NCBI RefSeq assembly: GCF_000143415.4
Contig: NW_003314261.1
Coordinates: forward strand, 4,442,691-4,506,690
From: Selaginella moellendorffii
Lineage: Eukaryota > Plantae > Lycopodiophyta
DNA length: 64,000 nt
Direction of reading: 5' to 3'
Shown one piece after another: positions 1 to 11,400 of the stretch (within the stretch, counting starts at the first letter, position 1; every line of letters begins with the position of its first letter). A program made the translations under genes and the position numbers. The notes under the pieces were generated by a model. The model was not told the DNA's origin and made no database searches. It saw only the letters and a program-made list of their open reading frames with translations.

Positions 1-1407
1 AAAGAGGCCTAATTTAAAACGCTTCAAGGCCATTCACCTTCAAGATAACTTGGTTCCCACAGGGCATATCAAACCAATTTTGAACAGTTGAGGAGTGTGC
101 TCTTTTTAGTGGCCAAAACCAGGTCGTCACCGGGCCAAAGAATAGAATTTTTTATTGAATTTATCTTTGTTGATTGAGTATATTTTTCTTGATTTTTTTT
201 TTTTTTTTGCCAATTGATAGAGGCTCTTGGGACATAAACATTATTAAAATGTAAATGTCATATAATTTAAATTCAGGTCTAGATATTCCCGTGCGCTTTT
301 TTAGTGGTCATTGGGTCAAAGAGTTTTTTTTTTTTTTTTTACTGAGTATATTTGTCATTACCAAGTACAATTTTTCAGCCACTCTAGTGTGTTTAACTAT
401 AAGTATATTATTCTTCCTTGCAATATATTATGTGCAAATTATTATGAATAATTGTTTGATGGGGCCCCAACAAAATTGGCCAGAAAAAAGGGTTCCTCAT
501 AGCTGTTGAGGATGCTTCTCAATCTGCTTCTTCCACCGTACCTGCTTACACCCTCTCGTGATTCCAGCATTATTTTCAGCCTTCTTATTCTGTTCCAGCA
601 CAGCATCCACCAAATTCACCTCTGTCCACATCCTCCACATTCATGTGTAAGTCCAAGGTAAGGACCTGTGTTATGTCAGTTAGGCCATAATCAGCCTGCT
701 TCACTTTCACCTAGCCACCTTCCCATTCTCATCAATGTAGAATTGGTCCACCCCTCATGTAACCATTGTGAATCTTCTTTTTGCCCCCTGTAAATCTGTA
801 AGAGTCATATTTTTTAGATATTCACTTAAAATATTTTGTTCCCTATTTTCCTTTACTTTGTTTAAAATAAAATAATGTTTTTTAAACCTTTATAAATTAT
901 AATTTAAAAAGCTGTAAATGAGGAAAGTTGGTTATGAAAGTTGAGTAGTCTGCATTCAAAGGGGTGGGCAAATTGGTTGCTAAATCCACTTTCAAACTCG
1001 GCAGCCAGCCCTAACCTTAAAGAAACTAAATTTAATGGTTGGGTCAACCATTAAATTGTGGAAACTCGAGTCTGGAACTGTTAACATGAGCCGGAACATT
1101 AGCAAGCCAATTATGGATGTATGTATACTTTGAAAACTCAAAATTTTGATCCATCCTTGTCGATCATCACCACTGAGTAGAGTTCCAAGGCGTCAGATTC
1201 TCAACTTGAATTTCAGGCTGCCATATTCAAAATATTAAAAGATGTTCTTTGCTGCAATCCAATCCCGAAGTTTCCTAGAACATGCTAACATTGTCGAAGT
1301 CAAAGAAATACCTGTGCTGACGTGCGAAAACGTCCTCTTGCCGCTGCTCCGTAGCGTACACGCGGAGAACTCCCAAGACTATTTACACACAGGCGTTCGA
1401 TCCCAAA

Positions 1408-2826
1408 TTGAAGATGAAAATGAGGGGTTTTCAGAATGGCCTCATCTCCCTGACATTGCTCCTGCTGTCATTCTGCTTCCAGTGTCATGCCAATCGTCCT
1501 GTCTTCGCTCACTACATGCTCTACGCTCCTTCAGGTCCCGATAATCTGGATGGCTACAAGGCCGAGATTCAGTACGCCAAGTCCAAGGGGATTGATGCAT
1601 TTGCGCTCAACACAAATAGCTGGGAGGACGTGTACAAGACCCGCGCTGACGGGATCTACCAGGCTGCCGACGAGCTTGGCTTCAAAATCTTCTTCTCGCT
1701 CGACATGCACAGGGACAACACGCACCTCACTGCGGAGAATGTCAAAGAGATGATTACCCGCTACTCGAGCAGGGCCAGCCAGTACTCCTATAACGGTAAG
1801 CAGTTTGTATCTACTTGGCTCGGCAACGAGGACACTGTGTTTGATGGCTACTCCAACGCGCTTGAGGGCTGGAACAAGGCGGTGTTCGATCAGATTGGTG
1901 GACGTGACAAGTACTACTTTGTAACTTTCTTTCCAACCGGCGGTACCGAGCAGGAGGTGACCAGCATGATCAATAAGTTCAACTCGCTGATCGATGGTCT
2001 TTATGCCTGGGATACTTCGGCTTGGCCTTATTCCAGCGCGGACAACTTCAATTCTCCTTCCAACGATAAAGATCAAGCGTATCTTCGAGCTTGCAAGAAC
2101 GCTGGGAAGTCGTATATGGCGAGCGTCAGCCCCTGGTTCTTCAAGCACGACGGATGCTGCAACGATGTCTGTACAACTCCGAAGGACCAGACCAGCTGTG
2201 GATGCCAGGTGAAGGGGAACTATCAGGGATCCGGTCTCTGGATAAAACGGTGGGAGCAGATCATAAAAGACCAACCAGATTTTGTAGAAATAGTTACCTG
2301 GAATGACTGGGTCGAGAGGACCTATGTTGCAAAAATGAACAATCCGAATTGGGGACCTCAGCAGTCCAACGACCAGGACTTTCCTCACGAAGCGTTCCTG
2401 GAGCTGGGCTCGTACTACATAAGCTGGTATAAGACCGGGCAGCAGCCTTCAATCACCGATGACTCCGTCTTCATCTTCTACTACTCGCAGAGCGCCAAAG
2501 TCACTGCGACGAACGATCCTTGCAAGCCTCAGAACGCGAATGTGTTGGATGATCGTGTTTATGTGGTCACCAAGCTCAAGTCCCCAGCCAGCGTTGAGGT
2601 GCAGTCAGGAGGTTCAACACAGAGCTTTCCTGTTGAAGCAGGCGTGACGACTGTGTCCATGCCGTTCCAAGAAGGCCAGCAAAGTGCCAAAGTGACGAGG
2701 GATGGCGCACAAATTCTTCAAGTTGTTGGAAGAAAGGGCATCAGCAACAGCTTCTCAACATATGACTATAATGTGTACTCAGGCTTCAGTGCGCTGGTCC
2801 TTCCTGAGTTCCTGACTGCAGCATAA
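1408..2826 (+). CDS. Secreted glycoside hydrolase family 71 (alpha-1,3-glucanase/mutanase), intronless
   Basis: 472-aa ORF with an N-terminal signal peptide. GH71 motifs VFAHYM, GIDAFALN, FKIFFSLD, YNGKQFVSTW, YMASVSPWFF, EIVTWNDWxE and C-terminal YDYNVYSG. Confidence 0.9.
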   Translation: MKMKMRGFQNGLISLTLLLLSFCFQCHANRPVFAHYMLYAPSGPDNLDGYKAEIQYAKSKGIDAFALNTNSWEDVYKTRADGIYQAADELGFKIFFSLDMHRDNTHLTAENVKEMITRYSSRASQYSYNGKQFVSTWLGNEDTVFDGYSNALEGWNKAVFDQIGGRDKYYFVTFFPTGGTEQEVTSMINKFNSLIDGLYAWDTSAWPYSSADNFNSPSNDKDQAYLRACKNAGKSYMASVSPWFFKHDGCCNDVCTTPKDQTSCGCQVKGNYQGSGLWIKRWEQIIKDQPDFVEIVTWNDWVERTYVAKMNNPNWGPQQSNDQDFPHEAFLELGSYYISWYKTGQQPSITDDSVFIFYYSQSAKVTATNDPCKPQNANVLDDRVYVVTKLKSPASVEVQSGGSTQSFPVEAGVTTVSMPFQEGQQSAKVTRDGAQILQVVGRKGISNSFSTYDYNVYSGFSALVLPEFLTAA

Positions 2827-3358
2827 AGATTAAAGTACTGTGAGGCTACTGTGAGAGAAAGCAACTTAAAATTTTGACAAAGACCTGTGCAGTTTCGCGC
2901 GAAAGGGAAACCGCTGAGTTGGTAGAACACAATAGTTAGCTCACAAGCAAAAAAACAGTAGGTAAACATTCCGCACAGAGAAACTTGACTCGATCAAAGG
3001 TGTCAGACACCGATTTGAGATAAAAACAGTTACTCGGGCGCCAAGAACACGAAATGTAAGTATAAGTGATTATGTGAACTTGTAAAAGGAAAAAAGAGCG
3101 AGAGCCAGACCTGGCTTGTTCTTCAAAAAAATAGAGTTGATGTTGGGACCTGTGTGTGATAATAGTACTCTCTAGAGCTTGTGATTCGAGCAGCCAGCGA
3201 CGGAAAGAAACATCCGACGCTTATTCCCGTTGCAATCTACAAAGCCGGAATGATAAGAACAAGAACAAAGAGCACTTTCCCACACTCGTACCTGGTGATC
3301 TAGCTTCGACGTTGGAGGCGCGGATACCACATCCGGAGAAGTTTCTCGCAAACAAAGC
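2789..3358 (+). repeat. ~570-bp direct repeat, copy 1 (copy 2 at 18236-18802)
   Basis: Near-identical from gtgcgctggtccttcctgagttcc to gtttctcgcaaacaaagc in both places. Confidence 0.95.
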
Positions 3359-3420
3359 TTATTTACATTATACGTTGCCCTCTTTTCTGAGCGCACACAG
3401 AGGCATTTTGGAGATTAGAA

Positions 3421-3722
3421 ATGGACGCAGAATGGGAGCACGTCCAGATGCCAAGATGCCAAGGATGGTGCATTAAAACCAGGTTCAATGGATCCAACAA
3501 TGCATGTTGGCACTCCCAGCATTGCCCAGAAGGGGCAACTGCTGGTGCGGAGAAATGTGAGGTCATTGGTGGCGGTCAGAACTATGGGGCAGGGAAGGAG
3601 AGTGTTCACTCTGCATCAGAGAGTAGGATTCCAAAGCTGTGGGTGAAACAGAGTACCGTAGAGGTAAATGTGGCTGTGAGGCAATTCTTTTATGCAAATG
3701 CCCTTCCTTTCAATTCTCCCTT
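3421..3722 (+). mobile_element. Degenerate hAT-family transposase fragment (BED-finger-like start)
   Basis: EWEHV..C..(W)C...F.G...H..HCP followed by AVRQFFYANALPFNSPFF, which resembles the plant hAT/DUF659 motif ARFFYxNxIPFN. The DNA is CpG-poor. Confidence 0.55.
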
Positions 3723-4177
3723 CTTTCCAGTCAAACACAGTTAACTAAAAGTCAAAGAAATTGCGGTGACTAGATTCTACCCAGAGAAAGTTATGTCACC
3801 CATCTCAGTTGTGCGAATCCATATTCTGTTTAGAATTTCGATACTTAGAACTCAGCCTTCTTTGGATGATGTTTGATACAAGACGTCTGAACGTCCTGGA
3901 CCTGTCGCAATATTAACAATGCGTTCTGTCCATTTATAAAAGGAGTGCTTGCATTTATAGAGATCCCAATTGCAAGTCTCAAGTAAAGCACACCGGCTAC
4001 TTGTTTCTCTAACCATATAAATGGGGTTTCTCATGCCAGTCAAACTGCATACATCTGAGTTTCGCAGTCTTTTGTTTTCTAGAGAAGAACGTTTCTTAGT
4101 GGGTGGCTACTGACTCTTGCTCGCATATTTGTACCATTTTCTCTTTTCCTTCTACATACTATCCTCCTCCTTTGGTC

Positions 4178-5294
4178 ATGGCTAGCAAGAATGATTCAAG
4201 TCTGACCAATGAAAGTGTTCTGGCCACTGCCAGTGGTGGGCGGGCTCTCCGTGGTTTCAAAGTGAGTGGCAAAGAGCCTGGGCCAGTGCTTAGCACGCAC
4301 GTCCTTCAGGTCCCCAGCAATCAGGGGCCCGGTGGATCCACAGAAGACCGAGACGTTGAAGTTCTCCAGCATTGAGGATTACAATACATTTCAAGAGAAG
4401 CTCAGCACTCAAGGATGGACTCTTGCGACAAAGGTCGGGGTGAGTTTGGGTAAATTGACCATGAAGCTGCAGGGTGATTACTCCGAAGAGGAGAAGGAGA
4501 AACACAAGAAAGAAATGCACAAAAAAGTTCGCACGGTCATCGTCACCGAGTCTTTGTATGTCCCCATGAAGTGCTTTCAGATCCCTCAACTCCAAATGAC
4601 CCTGACTGATGAAGCCAAGGCAGATGCTCGACGTGTTACCAGCGCTACTGAGGCGACAACTTTCTTGGAGAAATACAGCTCTCATGTGTATGCCGGTTTG
4701 TACCATGTTGGTGGCGTGCTCTTTAGGGAGGTGAACGTCACCAGCAGCCATGAGACCAATGCATGCTTGCTGATGCGCAGAGGATTATGCAAGCTGGAAA
4801 TCTCAGGTGAAGTTAGTTACAGCTCGCCATTTTTCGATGGCAAAGCTGAGGGTACGTTTTCACAATTCTCTGATACCGAGTCCTACGAGTTTGCCAACTC
4901 AAGCCTTCAGTTTGAAACATCGAAAGTAACAGTCCGTGTTTGGGGAGCAACATCAGTCGAGGCCAAGGACGAATTTCTGAAGAAGCTGGATGCTGATCAT
5001 GCTGCATGGGCCTTCATTGACAAGGATATCGACCAGCTGAAAGATCTGGTGGGTATTTGGGAGCTCATGGCAATCGACAGAGATCTGAAGAAGCCCGCAC
5101 TGGAGATTTGCAAACAATGGCACACAACATCAAGTGGAGAAGTTGCAGAACTTGCATCGTCAAAAACTGACGAGGACAAAAACAGAAGCAAATGGTTGAA
5201 GTCACTATTGGATAGGGGTAAGGCTTTTCAGGATGCTATACAGAAAGAAATCAACCAATCGAACTCCGGTACAGGAGATAACAAACCAAAGTAA
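4178..5294 (+). pseudogene. Frameshifted copy of the GVIN-N/MACPF-like gene
   Basis: An 8-bp deletion at ~4318 between gcaat microhomologies (cagcaatatagcaatcagg in copy 2 versus cagcaatcagg here) shifts the frame. Confidence 0.85.
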
Positions 5295-6754
5295 ACAAGA
5301 AAAAAGAAAAAAAGAAAAAAGTATTATAATATATAATATAGGGAGTGTACAAAATGCAGCTTCTTGAGACTACTGGACAGAGAAATTGGGGGCAACTCTG
5401 GATGCCTCCATGCGTAGATCTCGAGCAGCTGGTTTTCTGGTGTGGAAGCCATCGCCGGAAAGAGAGAAATGCATGGCAAATTTTCTTGCATCAACCTCGC
5501 CCACAGTGCATGGCGAATGAGACACACCTAAAACGTTGCCAAGCAAAAATTTGACCTGATCACTCCAACAGCAACATCGAGACCTGGTGGCGGCAGTAGA
5601 CGACCCTTTGGCCACCCTCGTTGGGTGAACCCCCTCTCAGATTGCAAAGGAGCTGGCAGATGATGCAATCAACGGGCGCCGAAGGCCCGCATTGCTCTTG
5701 GGTCCGCAACTCTGGCCCAGAGAAATAACATCGACCTGAACGCATCCCACAAAAGAATATCGGTCGTTACTTTAGACTTATCTTAGAATGATCATTCCTT
5801 GCGCCGAATAAGCCCGTAAAGATCTATTTGATGTAGAGCTTGCTCATTCGATCTATAATCTTCAGAAAGGAAACAACAAAATTCAAAACAAAGACGCCTC
5901 CTCCTCTACGTGGACGGAGCGCAGCACACGGAATGCAAGGCTCATCGGAAGATAGCTTGAAAGATCACAGAGCTGGTCCAAGAATTCAGTTGCTACGATT
6001 ACAAAACAAAACAGTGAGATTGCCAGAGGCAAGACAATAACAAATAAGAAAAACGTGGCTCCATCAGATGACAAACTCATTGTGGTGACGCAGAATGTTT
6101 CCATCATCGCGTTGATTGACATCTCGATGTTCTCCAGAATCCAGGCCTCAATCATTTGCTCGGAATGTTTCTGAGCAATCATCTTTTGATCAGATCTGCG
6201 CTCGAAGCGCTTAATCCACAGCAGCATGCAAGCGCACAGGAAAAAAAAATGCGACATAAGCAGCGAACGTTATTGTTAAAGCCTCTGGGACGTCATGAGA
6301 GCAACGTACAAGTATGGAACGAGTGCCCAGGTAGAATCGCCAGCTCCTCCCAAGTTCAAGAAAATGGACTGGACGACCTTTGAGTCCTGGTCTTTGCTTG
6401 CTCCAAACTGGCACGCTAGCATCTTCACCTTTGAGACTGCAGAAAAGATGGCGGTGCATGCATTGCAAAGTCCGAGACGAGTGAAGAGCACTTGATACGA
6501 GGACTTGCGAGGCGGCTACAGCGAGGAGGCATCGGAAGCTCAAGATATGGCCGACTTGGAGCGAGAAGTTCATAAGTGTCTCAAGCTCGGTCAAGCTCTT
6601 CAGCGCAGCGTCGCGGTCCCTTTTGCTGTGGAGATTGGAGGCAAGTTCTTTATTGGAGCCTAGGTGCAATTCAATAGCACCGCAAGAGATTGTTGTCCAG
6701 CTCTAAGTTCCACTTATTTCAATCTTCTTAACTTGGAAACAAAGCCTTCGAGCT

Positions 6755-8220
6755 TCAGGGATCATAGACATAAGCATGGAGAGTGAGCCACCTCTCCTCT
6801 CCCTCACATGACTCCAAGAGCTTATCTCGACCACATTCGTGGGCCGCCTGGTAGAGCTCGGCATGGCTACCCTCGAGAAGACTCTCCACGCTGTCCGAGA
6901 ATATCACACCTCCTGTGTCGCGCGTAAGCCTCCCAGCCTCCAGCAGTGCACGCCTCGCCAGCTTGTCTCCCACCTCCATGTCTGTCTTGCTCGCCGCGAG
7001 TCTCTCCTCCAATTTCTCGAGCGCTTGCTCCCCCACGCGGACTTCTTCCTCCAGCTCGGAAACTCTCTGATGAAGAGCCTCCAGATCGACCGGCGTTGGA
7101 TCCTCTACGACCGGTGGATGGTCGTGTGCCTTGGTGACCAGCTCCAAGACCCTCTCCTCGCATTCCTGGTCGATCTTTGCAAGCGCGAGCTGCCTCTCCG
7201 CCTTGGCAAGATCCTTGGCCAGGAAGTGCTGCTTGGTCGTGACAAGAAGGACGTTTCGATCATCCAGCTCCCACTTCCCTGCAGCGCAAGCAAACGCGTG
7301 CAAGTCATCCGGAGAAACCAGCACCTTGGAAGCGATCGCCGGCAGCCTCGAGGCATTTCTCCCGATTGCTGTCCTCGATGCCAAGATCGACCGCCAGCGC
7401 CGGATCCACATACTGCACCTTGTACATGGCGCCATCGAAGACGAATTCCATCGTGAGAGCCGAATCGCCAAATGCCGCTGTGACGACCACCATCTCGGCG
7501 AGAGCCCAATCTATCAAAACCATGGAAGTTTAGACACGATATAAAAGAAAGCTCCCGGCGGATATCAGGAAGATCGATCTGCCTGGGAAAGATAGAAATC
7601 TGTGAGAACGCAAGCTCAAGCATCCACATCTCCAAAGATCACAGACGATGGCCGTTGCTCGTAGAGGGTGGTAAAGAGCTCGCTCCACACGTGTTGTCCA
7701 CAAACCGCCCCGGCCTCGTCCACGATCGGGAACTCCTTGACCGCGTCGTGAAGATCTTGCACGTCCTTGCCGCTCTGGCACAGGAACTCCAGCGATCGAT
7801 CGTCCAGGCCAATGCGATCGCGCTGCTGGCGTCCCATTGCCTCGCGGAAGAAGTAGTCCCAGCTCATTCCTCGAGTGTAAGGCTTGCCGCTCTTCTCCAC
7901 CGCCTTGTTCCTCGCCATCTCCAGAAGTATCCGCCTCCTCACTAGCCGTGCGCGCTTCACATAGGCCTCCATTCCGCCCAGCGCGAGCTCCTTGTCCGTG
8001 CGATCCACATCGATCTGGGCCTTCTGCGCTTCCAGCCGGGCCACCAACTCCTCGAGATCCTGTGCGCTAGCTCCCTCTTCCTTGCCATGGATCGCCTGGC
8101 CTTGGCGCTCGGGTGCTTCTTGGTGCTTGGCATTATCTTTCCCCAAGACCACCACCGTGAATCTCTCGGGCAGCGGGCGATCGTGATCTTGGAGATCGAG
8201 CATCCGGAATCTTGCCGACA
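6755..8220 (-). pseudogene. Degenerate copy of orphan coiled-coil gene 11613-13341
   Basis: 5-bp deletion at ~7340, lost splice acceptor, internal deletions, and a 5' end replaced by a PPR fragment. Confidence 0.8.
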
Positions 8221-8392
8221 AGTGGACCAGGAGATTTCCCAGGAATCGATCGTCACGGAGCTGTGCCGAGGAGGATATCTGCGAATGCAGCTGGATTCCC
8301 CGCGCGAGATCCCTGGAATTGGCACACGAGCGCAGGAGTGAGGCGTAGCGCTCTCGGATCTCGTCTAGAGTCTCGCCCCCATGAGAAATCAT
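8221..8392 (-). pseudogene. N-terminal PPR gene fragment fused at the duplication junction
   Basis: YASLLRSCANSRDLARGIQLHSQI...DRFLGNLLV matches the PPR N-terminus, compare 16163 ORF FITILQSCSRRRDLPQGQRVHAQI...LLANLLI. Confidence 0.8.
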
Positions 8393-8423
8393 GGACCGAG
8401 GAAACCGCGATTTTTAGGCTTCT

Positions 8424-11400
8424 TTCTTTCCAGTCAAATACGGTCAACTAAAACTCAAAGATATTCTGTTGACTAACTTCTAACTATGCCAATCTCAGTT
8501 GTGCGAATCCATATGCTATTTAAAATCTCGATACTTAGAGCTCAGCCTTCTTTGGATGATGTTTGATACAAGACACCTGGCACACTTCTATCTCACAACT
8601 CTCATCAGCAATTTCAACAAGTCTGAACGTCTTGGACCTGTCGCAATATTAACAATCCGTTCTGTCCATTTATAAAAGGAGATTCTATGCTTGCTTGCAT
8701 TTCTAGAGATCCCAATTGCAAGTCTCAAGTAAAGCACACCGGCTACTTGTTTCTCTAACCATATAAATGGGGTTTCTCATGCCAGTCAAACTGCATACAT
8801 CTGAGTTTCGCAGTCTTCTGTCTTCTAGAGAACAACATTTCTTAGTGGGTGGCTACTGACTCTTGCTCGCATATTTGTACCATTTTCTCTTTTCCTTCTA
8901 CATACTATCCTCCTCCTTTGGTCATGGCTAGCGAGAATGATTCAAGTCTGACCAATGAAAGTGTTCTGGCCACTGCCAGTGGTGGGCGGGCTCTCCGTGG
9001 TTTCAAAGTGAGTGGCAAAGAGCCTGGGCCAGTGCTTAGCACGCACGTCCTTCAGGTCCCCAGCAATATAGCAATCAGGGGGCCGGTGGATCCACAGAAG
9101 ACCGAGACGTTGAAGTTCTCCAGCATTGAGGATTACAATACATTTCAAGAGAAGCTCGGCACTCAAGGATGGACTCTTGCGACAAAGGTCGGGGTGAGTT
9201 TGGGTAAATTGACCATGAAGCTGCAGGGTGATTACTCCGAAGAGGAGAAGGAGAAACACAAGAAAGAAATGCACAAAAAAGTTCGCACGGTCATCGTCAC
9301 TGAGTCTTTGTATGTCCCCATGAAGTGCTTTCAGATCCCTCAACTCCAAATGACCCTGACTGATGAAGCCAAGGCAGATGCTCGACGTGTTACCGGCGCT
9401 ACTGAGGCGACATCTTTCTTGGAGAAATACAGCTCTCATGTGTATGCCGGTTTGTACCATGTTGGTGGCGTGCTCTTTAGGGAGGTGAACGTCACCAGCA
9501 GCCATGAGACCAATGCATGCTTGCTGATGCGCAGAGGATTACGCAAGCTGGAAATCTCAGCTGAAGCTAGTTACAGCTCGCCATTTTTCGATGGCAAAGC
9601 TGAGGGTAAGTTTTCACAAATCTCTGATACCGAGTCCTACGAGTTTGCCAACTCGAGCCTTCAGTTTGAAACATCGAAAGTAACAGTCCGTGTTTGGGGA
9701 GCAACATCAGTCGAGGCCAAGGACGAATTTCTGAAGAAGCTGGATGCTGATCATGCTGCATGGGCCATCATTGACAAGGATATCGACCAGCTGAAAGATC
9801 TGGTGGGTATTTGGGAGCTCATGGCAATCGACAGAGATCTGAAGAAGCCCGCATTGGAGATCTGCAAACAATGGCACACAACATCAAGTGGAGAAGTTGC
9901 AGAACTTGCATCTTCAAAAAGTGACGAGGACAAAAACAGAAGCAAATGGTTGCAGTCACTATTGGATAGGGGCAAGGCTTTTCAGGATACTATACAGAAA
10001 GAAATCAACCAGTCGAACTCCAGTACAGGAGATAACAAGTAAACATTAACACAAAAAGGCAAAAAGGTAAAAGAAAAAAGAAAAAATATATAAAAGAAAA
10101 AGAGAAAAAGAAAGAAAGTAATAACTATATAAACCAATATTTAAATATAATATATGAATGTATAAAATGCTGAGACTACTGGACAGAGAAAATTGGGGGC
10201 AACTCTGGACGCCTCCATGCGTAAATGTCAGGCTTTTCTTGTTTGGAAGCCATCGCCAGAAAGAGAGAGATGCATGGCAAAATTTCTTTCATCAACCTCG
10301 CCCACAGTAAAAAGTTGCCAAAAGCAAAAATTTGACCTGATCACTCCAACAGCAACATCGAAACCTGGTGGCGGCAGCAGACGAGCCTTTGCTCACCCTC
10401 GTTGGTTACCGTTTCCTATTGCAAAGGAGCTGGTAGATGATGCAATCAACGGGCGTCGCCTGAGGCACGTATTGCTCTTTGGAGGTCCGGAACTCTGGCC
10501 CAGAGAAACAACACCAGAACGCATACAATGAGTATCCCTAGAAAATTCCCGATCAAGTCCAAGTCAACGGTCGTAAAGATCGATTTGATGTAGAGATTGC
10601 TCATCTGATCTATAATCATTCAAAACAAAAGACGCACGAAGTCGCAGATCTTTCGCCGAGCCTTGCATTCCGCGCCCGTTGTTTTGAATGCGCAAGGCTC
10701 GGGGAAAGATGATCCGCAGATCATCGGGCGTGGAATGCAAGGCTCATCGGCAGATAGCTTGAAAGATCACAGAGCTGGTCCAAGAATATCAGTTGCTACG
10801 ATTACAAAACAAAACAGTGAGATTGCCAGAGGCAAGAAAATAACAAATAAGAAAAACATGGCTACAGAATGTTTTCATCATCGCCTTGGTTGACATCTCG
10901 ATGTTCTCCAGAGTCAATCATTTGCTCGGGATGTTTCTGAGCAATCATCTTCTGCCCAGATCTGCGCTCGAAGCGTTTAATCCACATATCTGACGTAGAT
11001 CTATGTCTGATATATCTACAGCAGAAACAAGCGACAGGAAAAAAAATTACGACATACCTCACTAAGCAGTGAATGTTATTGTTGAAGCCTCCGGCATGCA
11101 TGTCGTCCTAGACGCTAGACGTCATGAGAGTCCCATAAAGACTCTGGAGAACTTGCCACCAGACTCCACAGCAAAAGGGACCGAGATGCTGCGCTGAAGA
11201 GCTTGACCGAGTTTGAGACGCTCATGAACTTCTCGCTCCAAGCCGGCCATATCTTGAGCTTCCAATGCCTCCTCGCCGAAGCGGCCTCGCAAGTCCTCGA
11301 ATCAAGCGCACCTTTGCTGGCTTCACTCGTCTCGGACTTTGCAAGGCGCGCACCGCCATCTTTTCCGGAGAAGCCAGCAGTATCAAAGGTGAAGATGCTA

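Follow-up and report, generated by a model that had tools for sequence, protein, structure and literature searches.

In a 64,000-nucleotide window of the Selaginella moellendorffii genome (contig NW_003314261.1, positions 4,442,691 to 4,506,690), an open reading frame (ORF) at 8924-10042 on the plus strand, here called copy B, encodes what is probably a detached relative of a giant immune GTPase. By sequence similarity, the entire protein is a homologue of the N-terminal "head" found in VLIG/GVIN-type GTPases, vertebrate ones included, and the model built for it has a MACPF fold. The head of VLIG-type GTPases is a MACPF domain across eukaryotes. This head module is pan-eukaryotic, and the Selaginella gene derives by truncation from a family resident in plants. 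Part of this was already known, since the three public Selaginella models that are near-identical to the ORF (SELMODRAFT_402710, SELMODRAFT_402708, and SELMODRAFT_408165; the sole matches in a word-indexed protein search) carry the automatic UniProt/UniRef label "MACPF domain-containing". What is new is that a lycophyte has a MACPF protein of VLIG-head descent with no GTPase attached, and also that a moss, a liverwort, and a fern have a head gene immediately 5' of a gene for a VLIG GTPase. In a literature search we found no paper joining VLIG, GVIN, or URGCP with MACPF, and none placing VLIG-type GTPases in plants.

An exhaustive phmmer (HMMER) search of 1.84 billion proteins (cluster representatives) with copy B as the query returned 180 relatives at E<=1e-3 and 64 at E<=1e-10, and the match is far beyond chance. 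The best non-self match, P0004, had an E value of 1e-41 and 33% identity (residues 7-317 of 1,954). Many matches are 1,900-2,500 amino acids (aa) long and align to copy B through an N-terminal stretch of about 300 residues, and the Pfam domains on the matches (URGCP_GTPase, PF25683; URGCP, PF25496; GVIN1_C) are all downstream of the matched head. Sequences from the sea urchin Lytechinus and the oomycete Thraustotheca are named "interferon-induced very large GTPase 1-like". Those from Saprolegnia, the fungus Jimgerdemannia, the bird Zosterops, and the frog Leptobrachium are named "VLIG-type G domain-containing protein", and one from Pelomyxa is named "up-regulator of cell proliferation". Rotifer and jellyfish proteins without a given name are further relatives. 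The relatives that carry the GTPase span sea urchin, bird, frog, rotifers, oomycetes, a fungus, and an amoebozoan, and in transcript-derived relatives the head and the GTPase are encoded in one ORF of 1,950-2,020 aa. In the word-indexed search the P0004 head matched itself only, and a word-indexed profile search returned 10 proteins. Some matches also have a precomputed PF26771 annotation.

We aligned the region common to copy B and its relatives (A3, 77 sequences), and the consensus reads ASGGxALxG ... FLxxFGSHVxxGxxHxGG ... TWxxIDRGxxxxxxPVWEL. The C-terminal helical hairpin of copy B is homologous to the first post-head helices in VLIG-type relatives, and the tblastn alignment of P0016 from Riccia extends to window position 10033. 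Copy B ends after this hairpin, while the relatives run on into a linker and the GTPase. Overall, the homology to VLIG/GVIN proteins (interferon-induced very large GTPase 1/URGCP) covers about residues 10-320, with E values from 1e-41 to 1e-6. Copy B is like the VLIG/GVIN head in its common motifs, its cytosolic nature, the lack of a signal peptide, and the first post-head helices. However, it has no URGCP helical domain, VLIG-type G domain, or GVIN1_C, and it is 372 aa long compared with about 2,000-2,500 aa.

The profile evidence indicates that the family is MACPF. Of the 77 A3 members, 35 individually pass the Pfam MACPF model (PF01823), the best at 8.7e-11, and P0007 scores 29.8 bits where the cut-off is 21.5. 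When the A3 profile was compared with PDB sequences, it matched pleurotolysin B (PlyB) at 1.9e-7, C8-alpha at 1.1e-6, and also C8-beta, and the alignment passes through the signature region YSSHVYAGLYHVGG. The MACPF signature (Y/W-G-T/S-H-F/Y-X6-G-G) appears in copy B as Y169-S-S-H172-V, 7 residues, and G181-G182; the spacer has one residue more than that of C8-alpha. G181-G182 are invariant in A3 and H172 is nearly invariant.

The AlphaFold2 (AF2) model of copy B, built on A3, has a mean predicted local distance difference test score (pLDDT) of 86.2 and a predicted template modelling score (pTM) of 0.83. It contains the bent four-strand central sheet (strands 59-65, 119-137, 177-197, and 238-258 by DSSP), helices between strands 119-137 and 177-197, and two helical clusters at the positions of the transmembrane hairpins TMH1/TMH2 (CH1/CH2), residues 66-118 and 198-237. 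In the second cluster, pLDDT is below 50 at residues 217-230. The best 50 Foldseek matches in the PDB were all MACPF proteins, with PlyB first (1.1e-9), followed by C9, TgPLP1, BT_3439, Plu-MACPF, GNIP1Aa, MPEG-1, and perforin. VIA-align, which is independent of Foldseek, gave Z scores of 12.6 for PlyB, 11.9 for C8-alpha, 11.5 for MPEG-1, and 10.5 for GNIP1Aa. The shape search of the ESM Atlas returned MACPF clusters only, and the feature search was in agreement. Copy B is thus predicted to have the MACPF fold.

The gene itself is an intact ORF of 372 codons without an intron, starting with the ATG at 8924 and ending with the stop codon at 10040-10042, and its translation contains the motif strings LTNESVLATASGGRALRG, ETLKFSSIEDYNTFQEKLGTQGWTL, FLEKYSSHVYAGLYHVGGVLF, and WAIIDKDIDQLKDLVGIWELM. 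The protein has three cysteines, and neither a signal peptide nor a transmembrane segment was found in it (top 19-residue Kyte-Doolittle mean 0.86). The public model P0002 (8924-10531, 407 aa) splices from residue 297 to an ORF further downstream, and its intron would delete W297, one of four invariant family columns, together with the conserved WEL motif. Because the unspliced ORF keeps W297 and WEL and is confidently modelled to its end, and because a contig of B', the counterpart of copy B on a second scaffold (see below), is continuous across the putative P0002 donor site, the intronless reading is better than the spliced model. As a single sequence, copy B drew a blank in Pfam, NCBIfam, and PDB-sequence scans, and no GTPase domain was found in the ORF with Pfam. 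A match to DUF4400 (E 0.085) and matches to Spo0F (E >1) were dismissed as chance. An A-rich tract lies immediately 3' of the copy B stop codon (10043-10120), and a shorter one follows the tandem paralogue, copy A (about 5295-5330). Together with the lack of introns, the tract could be the poly(A) remnant of a retrocopied truncated transcript.

An earlier note on this DNA, written from the sequence without database searches, had described an intronless 372-aa ORF with these motifs as a stand-alone, MACPF-like protein similar to the GVIN/VLIG N-terminus, with no GTPase domain and no signal peptide. The translation confirms the ORF and its motifs, and the similarity is borne out by the phmmer relatives and by the A3 consensus, which agrees with the VLIG/GVIN motifs given there. 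The fold agrees with Foldseek, VIA-align, the ESM Atlas, and the family profile, and the model has the four-strand sheet and both TMH clusters. The hydropathy profile and the domain searches likewise uphold the remaining points, including the tblastn and tblastx searches of the window and the other haplotype that are described below.

To place copy B among its relatives, we built a maximum-likelihood tree of 82 heads. Three Selaginella sequences form a clade (SH-aLRT support 98) with the fern Ceratopteris, P0004, P0005, P0006, and P0012. P0004, P0005, and P0006 each carry the VLIG GTPase, while P0012 is short (278 aa). One clade further out (support 99), the moss Sphagnum and the 2,020-aa fused transcript P0033 join this group. 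The nearest named relatives of the Selaginella gene are fern and moss sequences, and no seed plant is among the named plant matches. In Sphagnum tenellum (OZ234854.1; L007 10001-14001), the head gene is followed after an 87-nt gap by a URGCP_GTPase gene on the same strand. The same order was found in Ceratopteris richardii (CM035427.1; L009 10001-15137), where the gap is 67 nt, and in the liverwort Riccia sorocarpa (CM100795.1; L008 10001-16643), where the gap is 466 nt and a GVIN1_C gene comes after the GTPase gene. These head and body pairs are probably single MACPF-VLIG giant GTPase genes that were split by annotation. Moreover, a 239-kb contig (L003) contains a head and a 1,559-aa body that are collinear with P0033, and the nearest Atlas clusters of a copia element on this contig are mostly Streptophyta. 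The head-plus-GTPase arrangement therefore exists in seed-free land plants.

Searches by tblastn and tblastx across the 64-kb window and 21 kb of the other haplotype recovered no relic of the G domain or of GVIN1_C, and at permissive E values they gave chance-level matches only. Because moss, liverwort, and fern keep the head beside a GTPase while the Selaginella locus holds no such relic, we infer that the Selaginella gene is a detached head, derived through loss of the GTPase body in its lineage. The earlier note had related the gene to an animal immune module. This part does not stand as worded, since the module is pan-eukaryotic and the head lies beside a VLIG GTPase gene in moss, liverwort, and fern.

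Copy B is in one of two units of a tandem segmental duplication (Table 1). Copy A, in the other unit, has lost 8 nt at codon 47 (near window position 4316), and this leads to a stop at codon 66 of the original frame. Scaffold GL377573.1 (L006), which is collinear with window positions 1-15846 and 92-98% identical to them, repeats this two-copy layout and represents either the other haplotype or a segmental twin of very recent origin. On this scaffold, B' (14434-15534) is intact and encodes 366 aa, having lost 6 nt and 9 nt in frame. A' lacks 2 nt at codon 197 and 20 nt at codon 347. Each haplotype thus has one intact copy (B, B') and one frameshifted copy (A, A'). The claim in the earlier note that the gene is undergoing duplication is right in that the tandem copy is present in both haplotypes, but one copy per haplotype is broken. 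The public models P0001 (4178-5294), P0002, and P0003 (L006 10001-11090) all look mis-built; P0001 starts 3' of the copy A frameshift and P0003 omits some 30 residues that surround the 2-nt deletion.

Each of the three indels found in A and A' shifts the reading frame, and every indel of B and B' preserves it. B and B' differ by about 44 substitutions and two indels, and both ORFs are still open. In a simulation, 44 random substitutions left the ORF open 17% of the time, and with a factor of about 1/9 for two in-frame indels the joint chance is about 2%. Copy B also keeps all 12 residues that are invariant, or nearly so, in the family. These observations argue, with modest force, for constraint on the B lineage while the A lineage decays. 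The synonymous divergence (dS) of B is 0.038-0.039 to A and A' and 0.066 to B', a pattern that hints at gene conversion between the copies.

By analogy with other MACPF proteins, we lean, with considerable reserve, towards the reading that copy B is a functional cytosolic MACPF effector, with pore formation as its likeliest mode. In its favour, copy B carries the MACPF signature, the lengths of its TMH-equivalent regions, 53 and 40 residues, are the family medians, and the second region includes a cleanly alternating stretch, KLEISAEASYS. After the GTPase body was lost in the lineage, the free head would have been duplicated in tandem, with one copy per haplotype staying intact. It would bind a target membrane and oligomerise as other MACPF proteins do, and residues 66-118 and 198-237 would unfurl into beta-hairpins that pierce this membrane. 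The GTPase of the fused relatives presumably sets the place and time of perforation. The free head would be controlled through its expression, being off as long as the tissue is not challenged and switched on in defence, or alternatively by co-assembly with another protein. A broader proposal is that seed-free land plants keep a VLIG/GVIN GTPase with a perforin-like head as an ancient eukaryotic, cell-autonomous "coat and perforate" immune effector, the machine being the one that animals, fungi, oomycetes, and amoebae have, and that the Selaginella head would be a silent, inducible cytosolic pore-forming executioner or antimicrobial. We put this forward only as a speculation and consider it doubtful as a whole.

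Several observations weigh against a functional pore-forming effector. Copy B matched nothing in PF01823 at E<=10 and so did not reach the gathering score, and it has no recognisable membrane-targeting domain. In both TMH-equivalent regions, the charged fraction exceeds that of the median family member; in the first cluster, it is 0.34 compared with 0.21. The two amphipathic stretches described in the earlier note do coincide with clusters 66-118 and 198-237, but their beta-periodicity is only weakly above that of shuffles (p ~0.1 each). The best beta-moment windows exceed the shuffle mean at p ~0.12 and ~0.09, which is not significant; the one in the second cluster is KLEISAEASYS (p ~0.09). 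Two of the four copies are broken, and the pairwise ratios of nonsynonymous to synonymous divergence (dN/dS) among copies, 0.34-0.67 (0.53 for B and B'), are only moderately below 1. B' has the change H172Y at the near-invariant signature histidine, and the branch to the Selaginella sequences is long (1.33). The homodimer prediction for the copy B protein scored 0.00, which counts neither way.

The RNA data belong to the same side. In three 2026 RNA-seq runs, sampled at about 9.2 million reads each (about 12% of each run), about one read fell on the copy B ORF. A 51-nt island at 10742-10792, about 700 nt 3' of the ORF and repeated at about 5930-6060, was covered 20-40x in the three runs, and therefore these runs do contain S. 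moellendorffii RNA. The ends of the island reads are loose at either side, nearly all of the reads have A, not C, at 10751, and they look derived from an exon of a paralogue that is strongly expressed from another place in the genome. In a small 2020 run, X1, three contigs cover 9036-9971, and 23 of 23 listed differences match B'; the RNA nature of this run is only guessed. The earlier note had named lack of expression as grounds for giving up its reading. The near absence of ORF reads in the three sampled runs and the B' contigs together decide neither for nor against this, and expression of copy B or B' is only putative.

Many of these points would also be expected if the ORF were the leftover 5' part of a body-deleted VLIG-type gene, silent and drifting to a pseudogene, with B and B' open by chance. 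The independent frameshift lesions in two of the four copies, the dN/dS values (0.82 for the core of B and A), the changed histidine of B', the scarcity of RNA reads in the three runs, the long Selaginella branch, and the unusually charged TMH regions all fit such decay. However, B and B' are open over 366-372 codons with their indels in frame, which has the low joint chance given above, and every family-invariant residue scored is kept in B. Moreover, the model has high confidence from end to end, with the C-terminal helices included, and B' contigs occur in a probable RNA run. We therefore take decay to be possible but unlikely. If the free head were silent and inert, the finding would reduce to gene decay.

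A functional protein need not be lytic, and several MACPF proteins, such as the astrotactins and plant CAD1/NSL1, are not known as lytic. The free head could cap or seed assemblies of full-length MACPF-VLIG proteins encoded at another place in the genome, or act as a signalling or decoy protein. By homology it corresponds to that part of a larger machine which oligomerises, it carries no targeting domain itself, both TMH regions have a high charge, and Astrotactin-2 is among the structural matches. On the other hand, no full-length Selaginella VLIG is among the named matches, although the genome itself was not directly searched, and the signature motif and TMH lengths are typical of the family, so a non-lytic role seems improbable. 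Recent horizontal acquisition as a toxin gene from a fungus, an oomycete, or a rotifer would agree with the abundance of relatives in rotifers, oomycetes, and a plant-symbiotic fungus, with the intronless gene and its upstream GH71 neighbour, and with the Riccia homologue, which groups with oomycetes apart from other plants. But Selaginella falls within the support-99 clade of fern and moss and not with fungal, oomycete, or rotifer sequences, both haplotypes hold the locus between ordinary plant genes (TCP-1 and PPR), and the local GC content is unremarkable. We regard such a transfer as very improbable.

Among solved structures, PlyB (4oej, 9do6, 9do9) is the best match by profile, Foldseek, and VIA-align. 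It has the central sheet, the two TMH clusters, and the GG signature in common with copy B, although the two are just 9-13% identical. At its C-terminus PlyB has a beta-rich domain, and its membrane binding requires the partner PlyA, whereas copy B has a helical hairpin at this place and no known partner. Complement C8-alpha/C9, perforin, and MPEG-1 have the same fold, but they are secreted or luminal, disulfide-rich, and equipped with ancillary domains (LDLRA, EGF, C2, MABP), while copy B is cytosolic and has no ancillary domain. The plant CAD1/NSL1-type MACPF proteins, which are linked to cell death and immunity, belong to the same superfamily. Copy B differs from MACPF proteins defined by PF01823 in staying below that model, and its nearest relatives in the tree are VLIG heads. 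From their sequences, VLIG-head proteins appear to add a second MACPF lineage to plants, beside CAD1/NSL1. A survey of plant MACPF genes, which used BLASTP with Arabidopsis seeds, listed two Selaginella genes, both CAD1/NSL1-related "group IV", and the copy A and copy B genes are probably not these two.

GVIN1 was found to coat cytosolic bacteria (bioRxiv 10.1101/2025.03.24.645074). In that study its "N-terminal domain" is unnamed and MACPF or pores are unmentioned, and the human GVIN1 studied was the longest ORF, of 1,808 aa. The bird and frog VLIG proteins (P0101, P0117) are about 2,400 aa long with the MACPF head at about 160-510, and because of this difference in length the human ORF studied may lack the head. 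How GVIN1 harms the coated bacteria is a question on which a MACPF head may bear. At 372 aa, the free head of Selaginella is small and easily expressed, and it allows the VLIG head to be tested as a membrane perforator without a 2,000-aa GTPase.

Table 1. Coordinates of the duplicated MACPF locus and of the elements of copy B in the window
Feature	Position	Strand	Basis or remark
Copy B (SELMODRAFT_402710 locus)	8924..10042	+	ORF call, AF2 model, MACPF structure matches, HMMER relatives
First helical cluster (CH1/TMH1 equivalent), residues 66-118	9119..9277	+	DSSP of the model; between strands 59-65 and 119-137
MACPF signature region, residues 169-182	9428..9469	+	A3 columns; profile-PDB alignment to PlyB and C8-alpha
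Second helical/disordered cluster (CH2/TMH2 equivalent), residues 198-237	9515..9634	+	Between long strands 177-197 and 238-258
C-terminal helical hairpin, residues 304-369	9833..10030	+	Helices 304-329 and 334-369, pLDDT 93-98
Copy A, tandem paralogue (SELMODRAFT_402708 locus)	4178..5294	+	96.6% DNA identity to copy B
Tandem segmental duplication, unit 1	3811..8220		Patchy 82-97% identity to unit 2
Tandem segmental duplication, unit 2, holds copy B	8501..13217		Identity to unit 1

There are several other genes around the duplication. An intronless 472-aa ORF at 1408-2826 on the plus strand, also present at 7457-8863 of L006, has a full-length Glyco_hydro_71 domain (3.8e-93). The GH71 family is found mainly in fungi and bacteria, and this ORF is a possible candidate for horizontal transfer. 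Each duplicated unit has a minus-strand ORF (7616-8392 and 12163-13341) with no Pfam match, the N-terminus of which is PPR-like by eye. The duplication is flanked by a PPR gene, which is intact, and by a gene for a TCP-1/cpn60 chaperonin, and the ORFs at 13626-15299 on the minus strand and 16163-17938 on the plus strand are listed among these.

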